Part shown: positions 20,929 through 38,481 of the stretch, one piece after another
Layout: the number at the start of each line of letters is the position of its first letter
How positions within the stretch are numbered: position 1 is the stretch's first letter
DNA from: Oculina patagonica
Lineage: Eukaryota
Reading direction: 5' to 3'
Assembly: GCF_052425735.1 (NCBI RefSeq)
Contig: NC_135762.1
Span: forward strand, 25,110,001 to 25,174,000
Length of the DNA stretch: 64,000 nucleotides
Program-made: the position numbers and the translations under genes
The notes under the pieces: model-generated
Database searches by the model: none
What the model was told of the DNA's origin: nothing
Seen by the model: only the letters and a program-made list of their open reading frames with translations

Positions 20929-21846
20929 CTACAAACTTGTCTTGTTCCACTCTACTCCATAAAAAATAGATCCTTCTGGGTACAAACAAGCTTCTCTTCT
21001 TATTCCAAACTTTTGTTCAAGTTCCTTTACCACCTCTTTCTCTCCATTTAGAAGCTTTCTGGTTTTCTTCACTCTATTGTCCGGCAAATATGTCGAGGTC
21101 ACAAGTTTGTTTCCTGAGAGAGTTATTCTTCCCCAGGGTTTTGCTACAGTGCAGATGCGATCGTGGGTAAATGGTGACCTTGGATCTGTTTGATGGAAGA
21201 GTAACATGTCGTGGAAGTCGTGAATGGTTTTGGGAACTAAATCGAATTTGTATCTTGGTACCCAGCCGGGGTTGTCCTCGCAGCTGAATAACTTCTTCGC
21301 GCCTTCTTCGCAGCCGAACTCGTCAAGCACAATTTTAATTCTTTCTTCGAAGATGTATTGATCTCCATGTTTCCTAATTCGGTCTGATCCACTTTGCTGC
21401 ACTTGACCTTCCAACAAGCCACTCAATCGAAGCGGTGGAGAAGACAAGTACCCGAACCCAACGTCAGATAGCCACACATCGCCTTCAATGTCTATTGCAA
21501 GAACGACATGACTTGGTGGACTTAGACTGCCCGTCTTGTAGTTGAACACTGAAGCAGCGTGTAGTTTGTGTTTGAATCCAAAATGAACAAGGAGAAGAGA
21601 AAACATTCTGTTAACCTCATAGCAAAATCCACCGCGATGTCTTCGCACGATTTTGTCGAACAGCCAATTTTTGGAGAGAATTATTTTCTCCTTTCCAAAC
21701 ACGCTCAAGTTTTCAAATGGCACTGATAAAATATGACATCGCTGCAGTGCTGTTAACGCCTCGATAGTTGGTTCTATGGGTCCTGTATAGTGAATACGAG
21801 CTAAATATTCTTCTACTTCGTCTGGGGCGAAATGCTCTTGCGCCAT
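20929..21846 (-). CDS. NAT: Arylamine N-acetyltransferase (NAT) copy 1, 305 aa
   Basis: YLARI, VPFENL, RGGFC (catalytic Cys), SHVVL (His), DVGFG (Asp), SPFT; single exon. Confidence 0.92.
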   Translation of the reverse strand: MAQEHFAPDEVEEYLARIHYTGPIEPTIEALTALQRCHILSVPFENLSVFGKEKIILSKNWLFDKIVRRHRGGFCYEVNRMFSLLLVHFGFKHKLHAASVFNYKTGSLSPPSHVVLAIDIEGDVWLSDVGFGYLSSPPLRLSGLLEGQVQQSGSDRIRKHGDQYIFEERIKIVLDEFGCEEGAKKLFSCEDNPGWVPRYKFDLVPKTIHDFHDMLLFHQTDPRSPFTHDRICTVAKPWGRITLSGNKLVTSTYLPDNRVKKTRKLLNGEKEVVKELEQKFGIRREACLYPEGSIFYGVEWNKTSL

Positions 21847-22089
21847 GATCGAGGATTAGTGTTGTGTGACACATCACGTTTATCCGCTGGATAAGAGTCA
21901 CGCGGGCACTGGGATCGTGGCGGTGAGTTCGATATTCAGTCAACGATAGACGTTTATATCGGAAATCAATCGATATTAAAAACAACTGATTGATCTTGAT
22001 TAATATCAGTAATCGAATAGCATAATAGCATCAATCATTAAGCTCAGAAAATTGTTATCGATTGGCAAAAATCGATAAAAAATGATAAT

Positions 22090-22203
22090 TCAACATCGCT
22101 GCAGTTCTGTTAACGCCTCTATAAGTGGTTCTGTTGGGCCAGTATAGTGAATATGAGCTAAATATCTTTCAACTTTGTCTGGGATGAAATGATCCGGTTC
22201 CAT
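22090..22203 (-). pseudogene. 5' fragment of a NAT gene
   Basis: Minus strand translates MEPDHFIPDKVERYLAHIHYTGPTEPLIEALTELQRC*; homology stops there. Confidence 0.85.
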
Positions 22204-22353
22204 TTTGCTAAGTCTACTAACTATGGCTAAGTTTACTCACAATTCGATCTCTGAACCCGCGTTTTCTTTTACCAGCGGATATACGCGAGAAGTCACGCGA
22301 CACGTCACGCGACAATTCTCAGTCTGACTTCGATTCTACTTCCGCAATTATAT

Positions 22354-35780: not shown

Positions 35781-35896
35781 ATGGGAGAGGGGGGGGGGGG
35801 CAGATCCTCCTGGACCGTGCATGGCTTCCTCCCCTCACCCCCCTTTTTGCCCTGCCATGCACTCCACTCAATCACCCTATACCTTGGAAGGGAGTG

Positions 35897-36046
35897 AGTT
35901 AGAGTGATTTCAGTTAACCCGTGAAATAGTTATTACACTTTTAGATACTATTAAACACAAATTCCATTGTTTTCTTTTGTTTCCGTTCGACTATTACGCA
36001 CAAACTGCTAGATATTGTTTCACGGGTTAAATGAAATCACTCTAAC
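35897..36046. mobile_element. Small MITE
   Basis: TIRs GTTAGAGTGATTTCAGTTAACCCGTGAAA / TTTCACGGGTTAAATGAAATCACTCTAAC. Confidence 0.6.
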
Positions 36047-37551
36047 AGTCTGGTTGCAAAGGAGAGTATAAAACTTCTTCTTAATATGGGCTAAAATCTA
36101 AGCACTCATTCCCTGCCAGGCTTCCGCGCATTTTCTAAACTGGCTAACTATGAAGGACAAAGACGAGGTCCCCTCCAATAATAAAAATTTGCGCAGGCCT
36201 GCAGAGTTAGCATATTGTGACTGGCGCGAGCTACCTCCTATAAATTTTGTTTCCATGAGATCCTCAAATAGACAAGTATAAGGTTGTGAAGAAGCAATAC
36301 TCTATTGTATTTATTGTTCACCAATAAATTTTCCTACAGCTTTGATTTTGGCATAATTTCTAAAAAATATGAGTACTGCTAAAAGCATAAGATGCTTTTT
36401 TGGGCACAATCTACCAAACAGGCTTATGTCCGTCTACCAATTTTAAACTTCAAATTCTAATTTTAAAATCACATTAAATCTCTAATATTCCTATGAAGCA
36501 TTTTCGGATTGCTTTAAAAGCGAGCAAGATATTTCCGTTAAATTCTAATGAGCATTGGAAATTCTAATGAGCCACCTTAAGGGTTAAAAAGCTGTAAATT
36601 TAATAACGGTCAGATGTGGTCAAGTGTTTTTTTTTTGTTCACGCGACCTTGTACCGCGTAGAGGAGTACCGCGTGTACCACGTAGAGGACTACCGTATAC
36701 GCGGAACCGACCGCAAATGACATAGAGACGAATGCAAATGATTCCGCTAAAAAGAGAATGGTGTGGATAGGGGATATCACGGGATAGTTATAGCTTATTG
36801 GCACAAGTACTGTTTTTCTCGAATAATGGTCAATAAGCTATAGTCGTCCGGCCTTGATTATTTACTCGCTCCATGGAATATCCACCCTCTCATTTTGGAG
36901 ATGCTTCTGAAGACCCATGTTTTGACCTCACAAATCATTGTTATGTTTTTAGCGACGCTTATAACAACTCCATTGCGATACCATGTATTTTTCCCTTGAT
37001 CAACAAAACTGGCTTCGTGTAACTTCAAAGCAGATTCTAAACGACACTGCAACTTACGTTGCATATCCTTTGACGTCCCTTTAGTTCAGCGGTATTTTTC
37101 TATAAACAGTTGAAAAAAATAACGGCCACATTTATAGCAGGAAGCCCAAAATATTAAAGTCCCATGACAATCTTTTAAAAAACATTACATTTCTCCGAGC
37201 ACTCTCTAACACCCCCCCCCCCCCCAATAATTAGTTATAATTGTACACTAAAGGGGCTCAAAATCGGAAAAGTTATATCTATAACTAAATATAATTATAA
37301 GCCTTTCTTAAGGGCCTATTCACAGACGGATTTTTTCGTCAGAGATTTGGTGGGAGGGGGCGCCAGGAGGGGCGGGGGTGGGGGTTCGGCATTTTAAGGT
37401 AGTCACAATCATTCAGATGAGTACAAACCCAAGTCTGCGTGAATCAATTTCTTTTCTTTGCGTGACTTTTGACTATCATGGTCACTCACGTTCATGTTTC
37501 ATTGTGTCACAGACAGACACATTATGCTTCTTTTATGCCATTTACGCCAAA

Positions 37552-38481
37552 ATGGAACGAGATCAGCTTACCCCAGACGAAGTAAAGGAATATTTAGCAC
37601 GTATTCACTATACAGGACCCATAGAACCAACGATCGAGGTCTTGTCCGAACTGCAGCGATGTCACATATTATCAGTGCCATTTGAAAACTTGAGTGTGTT
37701 TGGAAAGGAGAAAATAATTCTCTCCAAAGATTGGTTGTTCGACAAAATCGTGCGCAAGCATCGCGGTGGATTTTGCTATGAGCTCAACACGATATATTCT
37801 CTTCTTCTCGACTTTTTTGGATTTAGTCGCAAGCTGCATGCTGGTACAGTGTTCAGTCGCAATCAGTCAGAACGTAAAGGAATGCCGTTTGATCATATGA
37901 TTTTGATGATCAACATTGAAGATGCTCTATGGCTGACTGACGTTGTGGCGACTATCCTGACGCCTCTTCGTTTCAAAATGACAGATCCTCAAGAGAAGGA
38001 GAGTGGAATTTACCGCATCCGAAAAGAGGGAGAAGATTATTTTATCGATGAGAATCTTAAAGAAATTGTTGACGAGTTTGGCCGTGAAGAGCAAAAAGGC
38101 ACCAGCCTTGACGAATTAGCGGCGAGCGAAGCGAGCCAAAGAGCTTTCACAGGCTATGACGAATGGGCCCCCAGATGCAAATTTGATCTCATTCCAAGAA
38201 CCACAGAAGACTTCAATGAGATGTTAAACTACCATCAAACAAACCCAGAGTCGCCATTCACTCACGACCGCATCTGCACCATAGCAACGCCCTCGGGAAG
38301 AATAACTCTTGCTGGTAACAAAGTGGTAACTTCGACATATCTGGGAGAAAACAAAGTTAGAAAAGTAACCAAAGAGCTTCTCGGTGGAGAGGAAGAGATA
38401 GTGAAGGAACTTGAACAGAACTTTGGAATTAGAAAAGAAGCTTGCTTGTATCCTGAGGGATCCTTGTTTTACCGGGATTAA
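37552..38481 (+). CDS. NAT: Arylamine N-acetyltransferase copy 7 (divergent), 309 aa
   Basis: ATG at 37552 aligns with the paralog starts (the ORF track extends upstream from a GTG); RGGFCYELN, DHMIL, DVVAT. Confidence 0.9.
   Translation: MERDQLTPDEVKEYLARIHYTGPIEPTIEVLSELQRCHILSVPFENLSVFGKEKIILSKDWLFDKIVRKHRGGFCYELNTIYSLLLDFFGFSRKLHAGTVFSRNQSERKGMPFDHMILMINIEDALWLTDVVATILTPLRFKMTDPQEKESGIYRIRKEGEDYFIDENLKEIVDEFGREEQKGTSLDELAASEASQRAFTGYDEWAPRCKFDLIPRTTEDFNEMLNYHQTNPESPFTHDRICTIATPSGRITLAGNKVVTSTYLGENKVRKVTKELLGGEEEIVKELEQNFGIRKEACLYPEGSLFYRD

Follow-up and report, generated by a model that had tools for sequence, protein, structure and literature searches.

The coral Oculina patagonica probably keeps the arylamine N-acetyltransferase family (NAT; PF00797, metazoan type) at a single genomic locus, and it is likely that this locus evolves by birth and death with partial gene conversion and encodes a battery of conjugating enzymes. 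Six intact NAT genes and three stubs are found in one 17.6-kb tandem array (Table 1) on a 34-Mb contig (NC_135762.1); the window, i.e. the whole stretch of 64,000 nucleotides that was analysed around it, is without N runs. A scan of the whole 529-Mb genome found no NAT locus elsewhere, with the one exception of the unplaced 10.6-kb contig C1496. The NAT genes of this facultatively symbiotic coral would all lie within the one 17.6-kb locus. The preliminary description had taken the host for a probable coral: it is indeed a scleractinian, and one of the C1496 copies is an NCBI protein named for Oculina patagonica.

Table 1. NAT genes, stubs and a candidate regulatory element of the array (positions in the window)
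Feature	Position	Strand	Description	Evidence and remarks
Cluster of five TTGCGTGAC motifs	20445..20866	.	candidate cis-regulatory element	3' of N1
N1	20929..21846	-	intact NAT gene, 305 aa	PF00797 E 1.1e-53; oldest type; inverted relative to the other copies
Fragment 1	22093..22203	-	N-terminal stub, codons 1-37, then stop	tblastn, translation; head-to-head with N2
N2	22354..23271	+	intact NAT gene, 305 aa	PF00797 E 3.4e-55; young N2-N5 group
N3	24874..25770	+	intact NAT gene, 298 aa, shorter C-terminus	PF00797 E 1.9e-54; tree
Fragment 2	27036..27126	+	C-terminal stub, last ~22 codons and stop	tblastn, translation, DNA match
N4	28723..29640	+	intact NAT gene, 305 aa, recent duplicate of N5	PF00797 E 1.2e-54
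N5	30911..31828	+	intact NAT gene, 305 aa	PF00797 E 1.7e-55; modelled copy
Fragment 3	33800..34000	+	N6-type 5' stub, 64 homologous codons	sequence, tblastn
N6	37552..38481	+	intact NAT gene, 309 aa	PF00797 E 3.8e-51

All six intact ORFs match PF00797 at profile positions 1-234 of 240 (E 1.7e-55 to 3.8e-51), with scores of 174-189 bits at a cut-off of 22.8. In all copies and also across 63 homologues, vertebrate and bacterial ones included, Cys75, His113 and Asp128 (N1 numbering) do not vary, and this triad aligns with that of human NAT1 (the Cys of the RGGWC motif, the His and the Asp). Blast searches (tblastn) with the intact copies over the whole window identified exactly three further pieces. 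Six ORFs with a Cys-His-Asp triad and three fragments had been described before, and ORF check, PF00797 matches and tblastn find all of them in their places; the assignment of the copies as NAT paralogues is likewise borne out by the PF00797 matches, the divergence and the tree. The coding regions run from Met to stop and are full length in comparison to both the PF00797 profile and human NAT1. The ORF of N6 spans 37378-38481 and opens at GTG; its real start by homology is the ATG at 37552. As the ORFs are uninterrupted and full length, and as no read joint was found within N1-N3, the coding sequences are intronless, a statement that covers coding sequence only.

The AlphaFold2 model of N5 (pLDDT 94.6) has the three-domain NAT fold by structural match: its best matches are human NAT1 and NAT2 (TM 0.79-0.85, E 1e-25 to 1e-26), with 7QI3, 8K51 and 8OOM matching more weakly (E 1e-15 to 1e-18). 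The N6 model (pLDDT 88) has an unchanged core and the same order of secondary-structure elements as N5.

The three stubs derive from different parts of the gene. Fragment 1 is an inverted 110-bp match (80%) to the 5' end of N2. For fragment 2, tblastn aligns 27058-27123(+) at 82% to residues 284-305 of N5 with the conserved stop retained, and DNA similarity extends over 27036-27230; a palindromic repeat adjoins it at 26595-27005. The homology of fragment 3 covers 33800-33990(+), corresponding to codons 1-64 of an N6-type gene, and is followed by a stop at 33998-34000; this stub is 92.7% identical to the 5' end of N6 and has retained its upstream region. Dead copies are thus represented by three stubs with stops in the window and by one frameshifted copy on C1496.

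Contigs from three sequencing runs, whose RNA label is a guess and which show neither strand nor expression level, cover N1, N2 and N3 together with their 3' flanks; one of them (25394-26195) extends 425 nt beyond the stop of N3. No such contig lies on fragment 1 or in the unique spacers 21900-22299 and 24100-24899, though a DNA run covers five of the six bins there. All read evidence refers to the region of N1-N3 only.

Tandem copies of this kind need not be real paralogues, but could stem from haplotypes left uncollapsed or from duplication in the assembly, and one part of the data fits this: C1496 is colinear with positions 33996-39184 of the window at 93-98.6% identity, a second version of the N6 end of the array, so that a part of the genome-wide NAT count would be haplotype redundancy. 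C1496 carries two intact N6-type copies and a broken one, and it starts at the very codon where the homology of fragment 3 stops. Judged from this start point and from the colinearity, the contig is a probable alternative haplotype of the N6 end, which makes it a probable case of copy-number polymorphism between haplotypes at a coral NAT locus. The six copies of the window, however, follow each other along a single 34-Mb contig, one of them inverted; their DNA identity outside the first 192 nt is only 68-97%, their spacers differ and they fall into three clades common to other species. Depth of the DNA run on unique pieces is even across N1-N3 (~30-40), which is the outcome expected of real paralogues in the read-depth check that had been proposed against haplotype duplication. 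An origin as haplotigs or by duplication in the assembly is therefore extremely improbable and, for N1-N6, effectively refuted.

In the phylogenetic tree, N1 clusters with the orthologues P0035, P0042 and P0047 (support 100), N2-N5 form a species-specific clade (support 96) and N6 is in a clade with P0062 and P0026. The tree shows three old NAT types that are common to other corals and, in addition, a species-specific burst leading to N2-N5. Pairwise dS among the six copies ranges from 0.07 to 0.86, with dN/dS between 0.22 and 0.40 in all pairs: N1 is distant to all other copies (dS ~0.8, dN/dS 0.22-0.30), N2 has dN/dS ratios of 0.36-0.38 within the N2-N5 group, and N4 and N5 share 93% of their amino acids (dS 0.073, dN/dS 0.40). 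There is evidence that the six intact copies of the window are all maintained by selection. Positive selection among N2-N5 was considered and rejected: sliding-window pN/pS is nowhere above 1, with its peaks (~0.5) around residues 81-130 and 205-235, and diversifying selection is not demonstrated, because no gene window has a dN larger than dS in this group. The N6 group has pN/pS values of at least 1, based on very few changes.

The first 192 nt of the genes are alike at 88-95% in all copies. Between N1 and its paralogues, the first 64 codons have a dS of 0.17-0.23 and the remainder one of 1.05-1.19, whereas between N1 and its orthologue P0042 the respective values are 0.70 and 0.68; the pattern at the protein level agrees with homogenisation of the 5' part. 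The first ~190 nt are thus homogenised by gene conversion in all copies. As N1 is closer to its paralogues than to its orthologue in the first 192 nt, the evolutionary mode is mixed: only in their 3' three-quarters do the paralogues evolve independently, without concerted evolution. The array is a clean case of gene conversion that acts on one part of the gene in a family evolving by birth and death. In the mechanism that we propose, unequal crossing-over would add young copies (N2-N5 and the extra N6-type copies of the other haplotype) and leave truncated stubs, while three old types, namely N1, N6 and the one ancestral to N2-N5, would be kept side by side. Gene conversion would prevent all copies from diverging in the first ~190 coding nucleotides, and the rest of each gene, including the loop after the catalytic Asp, would diverge under purifying selection.

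The preliminary description had proposed birth-and-death evolution, and the array has features of it: orthologous types that are old and three in number, a burst of copies specific to the lineage, the three stubs and, probably, a difference in copy number between haplotypes. Its suggestion of an undescribed system did not stand, given the known birth and death of vertebrate NATs and the tandem arrays of three to four NAT genes in other corals. The locus is an ordinary case of known gene-family evolution and no new kind of system, because birth-and-death evolution of NATs has already been described in vertebrates (Sabbagh et al. 2013, PMC3601968). Vertebrate NAT1, NAT2 and NATP belong to the same Pfam family with the same triad and three-domain fold; the coral copies align with human NAT1 over the full length and are ~28-38% identical to vertebrate NATs. 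Both have one uninterrupted coding exon and a cluster of paralogues with pseudogenes, and in both, genes are often gained or lost and paralogues are occasionally converted by one another. Differences are the density of the genes (six intact ones in 17.6 kb in the coral, but two genes and one pseudogene in 200 kb of chromosome 8 in humans), the coral conversion, which touches all copies but no more than their first ~190 nt, and the N6 type, which has no counterpart of human Phe125.

Bacterial NATs, for example of Mycobacterium, Salmonella and Mesorhizobium, share family, fold and triad with the coral proteins, but are shorter (250-280 aa), and the coral proteins form a clade of their own. The identity between coral NATs and some bacterial NATs from metagenomes is ~40%, and these outrank human NAT1. 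Horizontal transfer from bacteria was nevertheless rejected: NATs of fish and frog, at 38%, reach the same scores, and there is no sign of such a transfer. In an unrooted tree, vertebrate, bacterial and coral NATs separate cleanly as three groups.

Another coral has four tandem NATs in 13 kb that are syntenic with the array and end at the same Frag1/DRAM-family gene, and a further coral assembly has three NATs in 18 kb. More generally, NATs of other anthozoans (predicted proteins of Orbicella, Desmophyllum, Acropora, Stylophora, Actinia; ENA assemblies ERZ25067872, ERZ26692694) fall into orthologous clades that they have in common with the window. Oculina patagonica has six intact NATs, or eight with C1496, compared to two to four per contig in other anthozoans, and the N2-N5 burst and the pocket deletion of N6 are specific to its lineage. 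Synteny of the N1 type with one further coral (L012) was rejected: the orthologue there is flanked by a carboxylesterase and a GPCR, while the window has a GPCR of 23% similarity and no esterase.

The loop that follows the catalytic Asp governs the choice of substrate in human NAT1 and NAT2. In N6, a deletion of two residues removes the near-invariant Phe next to the catalytic Asp, which is kept by the orthologues in the alignment, and a surface loop has an insertion of 16 residues. N6, U1 and U2 all have no Phe at the position of human 125, and the residues aligned with 127 and 129 of human NAT1 vary among the paralogues. The array therefore offers three natural NAT types differing at positions that control substrate choice in the human enzymes.

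Each intact gene is predicted to encode a cytosolic Cys-His-Asp enzyme with a ping-pong mechanism, in which the acetyl group of acetyl-CoA would be transferred to the active-site Cys and from there to an arylamine, hydrazine or N-hydroxyarylamine. The paralogues would differ in substrate range and together form a phase-II conjugation battery. By homology we infer acetyl-CoA-dependent conjugation of arylamines or hydrazines by the coral NATs and a role of the array in chemical defence against xenobiotics. Corals are exposed to arylamine-type pollutants (dyes, pesticides, pharmaceuticals, breakdown products of sunscreen) as well as to microbial amines. To our knowledge, the phase-II conjugation enzymes of corals are uncharacterised, and in the literature searched we found no papers on cnidarian PF00797 enzymes or cnidarian NAT activity; the locus offers coral toxicology a compact gene set that can be tested.

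Human NAT1 acts on folate catabolites, and the coral enzymes could likewise serve endogenous metabolism (folate catabolites, monoamines, metabolites of symbionts or the microbiome) instead of xenobiotic defence, which we consider unlikely. The steady purifying selection on all copies and the conservation of three types across corals would agree with such a function, but vertebrate arylamine NATs are poor at acetylating arylalkylamines. Arylalkylamine N-acetyltransferases of the GNAT type are reported absent from Nematostella and Hydra (PMC4394704) and melatonin has nonetheless been reported in Nematostella (PMC4169136); fast copy turnover, stubs and variation in copy number between haplotypes are, however, typical of environment-facing detoxification families (PMC3601968).

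There is still less reason to expect that the array modifies secondary metabolites with other acyl donors, in the way of the fungal malonyltransferase FDB2 or the bacterial amide synthases RifF and GdmF. Enzymes of this kind do belong to the fold family (the N5 model matches 7QI3, 8K51 and 8OOM) and the N6 type has a remodelled pocket, but these matches are weaker than those to human NAT1 and NAT2, and the relatives acting as malonyltransferases or amide synthases are found in microbes, where they lie in gene clusters (PMC11213898). When the ten longest ORFs on the flanks were scanned against Pfam, they gave only a rhodopsin-type GPCR (7tm_1) and exons of the Frag1/DRAM-family gene, and no PKS, NRPS or tailoring enzymes among these ten, a scan that short exons of intron-rich genes could escape. 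The link to secondary metabolism that had been suggested earlier is not supported by these neighbours, which are not biosynthetic.

Anthozoans are reported to lack GNAT-type arylalkylamine N-acetyltransferases, and within the conjugating array that we favour, there is a slim chance that some copies have been recruited to acetylate endogenous or holobiont amines (serotonin toward melatonin, or arylamines of symbionts and bacteria). The N6 type, having lost the conserved Phe from the substrate loop, may be the best candidate for such a recruitment. If true, the array would be a locus of signalling or symbiosis chemistry and not a plain detoxification battery, and a sequence element shared by its genes could tie it to a wider regulon.

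This element is the 9-mer TTGCGTGAC: in an alignment of upstream regions, the motif or the palindrome built from it is present 20-160 bp upstream of N3, N4, N5, fragment 3 and N6. The window has 10 matches versus 0.32 expected, all of them inside the array. The core TNGCGTG of the xenobiotic-response element (XRE) has 27 matches versus 15.6 expected. Much of the enrichment of both motifs is inherited by duplication. A NAT-specific XRE regulon of AhR/ARNT was considered and not retained: the 9-mer is confined to the array in the window, but genome-wide it is a common, clustered element (259 close pairs versus 14 for the control), and for this reason it is not to be called NAT-specific or AhR-bound. 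In another coral, one NAT gene has four copies of it in its upstream region.

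The array is a genuine, well-formed tandem family of arylamine N-acetyltransferases (NATs). The preliminary description, six ORFs with a Cys-His-Asp triad (here N1 to N6) and three fragments, was confirmed in every detail: the ORF list for 19-40.5 kb contains six long ORFs with unchanged coordinates, all six match PF00797 (N-acetyltransferase, the arylamine NAT family) with E values of 1e-51 to 1e-55 over profile positions 1-234 of 240, and Cys75, His113 and Asp128 (N1 numbering) are invariant throughout. N1 is inverted relative to the others. The ORF of N6 opens at GTG 37378, and homology places its true start at ATG 37552, giving a protein of 309 aa. 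With the six proteins as queries, tblastn identified exactly three further NAT pieces in the whole window (listed below with the neighbouring genes). The breakpoint of fragment 3 (33990-34000) coincides with a short GT run, and a (CA)n/(TG)n microsatellite at ~35560-35750 gives rise to minus-strand ORFs of His-Thr repeats.

NAT fragments and genes flanking the array (positions in the window)
Feature	Position	Strand	Description
Fragment 1	22093-22203	-	codons 1-37, then stop; tblastn
Fragment 2	27058-27123	+	last ~22 codons and conserved stop; tblastn
Fragment 3	33800-33990	+	codons 1-64 of an N6-type gene, stop at 33998; tblastn
Rhodopsin-family GPCR	15390-16748	+	uninterrupted 452-aa ORF, 7tm_1 E 2.5e-46; just outside the array
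Frag1/DRAM/Sfk1-family gene, two exons	42653-43081, 44195-44614	-	downstream of the array; first exon is the 80% synteny marker

A six-frame scan of the 529-Mb assembly returned nine PF00797 matches, a count that is a lower bound: the six window genes and three on C1496, an unplaced 10.6-kb contig. Thus, C1496 apart, the array is the entire NAT complement of this coral. The best outside matches are scleractinian and sea-anemone proteins.

That N1 to N6 are real paralogs and not uncollapsed haplotigs is borne out by three observations. Pairwise dS ranges from 0.07 (N4-N5) over 0.19-0.32 (within N2-N5) to 0.57-0.86 (N1 or N6 versus the rest); the duplicated unit comprises little beyond the ORF and ~100 bp of flank, and the spacers, which contain high-copy repeats, are unrelated to one another; and, when 20900-26899 was compared with contigs of one DNA run and of three runs guessed to be RNA, the DNA-run depth was even (about 30-40) over unique segments across N1-N3. 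A dN/dS of 0.22-0.40 in every pair among the six genes shows that each intact copy has evolved under purifying selection, and the spread in dS that the duplications are of very different ages. Very high-copy repeats at 23700-24100 and 26100-26900, with a depth of thousands in the RNA-guessed runs and between tens of thousands and ~147,000 in the DNA run, are probably transposable elements, which may have mediated NAT truncations. A self-complementary stretch of 410 bp (26595-27005) within the high-copy repeats adjoins fragment 2.

In all three RNA-guessed runs, contigs were present on N1, N2 and N3 and their 3' flanks. No RNA-guessed contig fell into the six unique spacer bins (21900-22299, 24100-24899), five of which are covered by the DNA run, and none covered fragment 1. 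This pattern fits transcription of N1, N2 and N3 but is not proof, as the RNA label is guessed and contigs give neither strand nor level.

C1496 is colinear with window positions 33996-39184 at 93-98.6% identity, but has three N6-type copies versus one in the colinear part of the window. Two are intact: U1, with 96% amino-acid identity to N6, and U2, with 92% over the aligned residues; the third is frameshifted, with stops. The contig starts at codon 65 of this broken copy, the very point where fragment 3 loses homology. On the simplest reading of the sequence, C1496 is probably an alternative haplotype path; in that case the sequenced individual would be heterozygous for NAT copy number at the N6 end of the array.

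The six genes also bear the signature of partial concerted evolution: identity among all six is 88-95% over the first 192 nt of the CDS and 68-97% over the remainder. Between N1 and its paralogs, dS is 0.17-0.23 in the first 64 codons versus 1.05-1.19 in the rest; the corresponding values against the ortholog of N1 in another coral are 0.70 and 0.68. At the protein level, the N-terminus of N1 is 84-92% identical to N2-N5, 81-83% to N6-type copies and 69-83% to orthologs; across the remainder of N1, identity is 56-63% with paralogs versus 74-80% with orthologs. N1 is thus nearer to its paralogs at the 5' end and nearer to its orthologs elsewhere, the hallmark of gene conversion restricted to a 5' module. 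A block of ~100 nt upstream aligns among N1-N5 and may be part of the same converted tract. A DNA-run depth spike over the 5' end of N1 is consistent with words common to several copies.

In a maximum-likelihood tree of 82 proteins, N1 groups with proteins of other assemblies (support 100), a second cross-species clade holds N6, U1 and U2, and N2-N5 make up a clade found in this species only (support 96), next to two genes of another coral. This other coral (ENA ERZ25067872) carries a tandem of four NAT genes within 13 kb; the last is of N6-type, and the sequence following it is 80% identical to the Frag1/DRAM-family exon of the window (locus L011, 19980-20610), so the locus is old and syntenic between corals. 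In a third assembly, three NATs lie within 18 kb; as other assemblies have 2-4 copies per contig, this genome is at the high end among corals. In yet another coral (ENA ERZ25067879 ctg73833, region 1360-6456), the N1-type ortholog has no NAT neighbour within +/-10 kb; one side holds three pieces of carboxylesterase (PF00135) genes, the other side two genes for GPCRs. Like NATs, carboxylesterases belong among the detoxification-type families.

The XRE-like core TNGCGTG is modestly enriched (27 matches versus 15.6 expected). The 9-mer TTGCGTGAC has ten matches in the window versus 0.32 expected, all inside the array: five are clustered just 3' of N1 (20445-20866, 420 bp, including a long inverted repeat at 20630-20690), and the other five are found 20-160 bp upstream of N3, N4, N5, fragment 3 and N6, being one arm of a palindrome at N3-N5. 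In another coral, the 250 bp upstream of one NAT gene contain four copies. The close pairs (within 30 bp) genome-wide, 259 versus 14 for the reversed control, speak against a NAT-specific element and make TTGCGTGAC a candidate general cis-element. Some pairs lie in repeats, and some that recur with identical spacers are probably part of transposable elements.

Over its full length, N5 aligns with human NAT1 (E 1e-28), and its AlphaFold2 model (pLDDT 94.6) best matches human NAT1 and NAT2 (TM 0.79-0.85), followed by bacterial NATs and then by a fungal malonyltransferase and bacterial amide synthases. Human residues 125, 127 and 129 set NAT1-versus-NAT2 substrate preference. Human D122-x-G-F125-G-R127-x-Y129 corresponds in the alignment to the coral motif following the catalytic Asp; the equivalents of 127 and 129 are Tyr and Ser in N1, Gly and Tyr in N2, and Asp and Cys in N3-N5. 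In N6, U1 and U2, a two-residue deletion removes the near-invariant Phe at the F125 position, which their orthologs in other corals retain. A surface loop is extended by 16 inserted residues in N6 and U1, but not in U2; in the N6 model (pLDDT 88) the core fold is preserved and confidence is low in the insert only. The substrate pocket is remodelled in one lineage, the N6 type. Residues 81-130 and 205-235 have the highest density of substitutions (pN/pS up to ~0.5), and nowhere along the genes does dN rise above dS among N2-N5. We infer that the enzymes conjugate arylamines or hydrazines in an acetyl-CoA-dependent reaction, each paralog with a substrate range of its own.

The proposed secondary-metabolite locus found no support: the long flanking ORFs are the GPCR and the Frag1/DRAM-family exons, with no biosynthetic gene among them. 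Nor is the system undescribed: in vertebrates, NATs are known to evolve by birth and death, through duplication, loss, pseudogene formation and occasional conversion (PMC3601968), and the coral array is a further case of this kind. Microbial NAT diversification has been surveyed (PMC11213898), and literature searches found no paper on cnidarian NATs. What is noteworthy is the sole NAT locus of a genome, its high copy count for a coral, the 5'-limited conversion, the probable haplotype copy-number variation and the remodelled pocket of one lineage. There is no sign of horizontal transfer from bacteria, as the coral NATs are equally close to fish and frog NATs and to bacterial ones. One frog protein (P0121, 545 aa, Pristimantis euphronides) contains a tandem pair of NAT domains and probably results from the annotation joining two neighbouring genes, in which case it would further hint at tandem NATs in vertebrates too.
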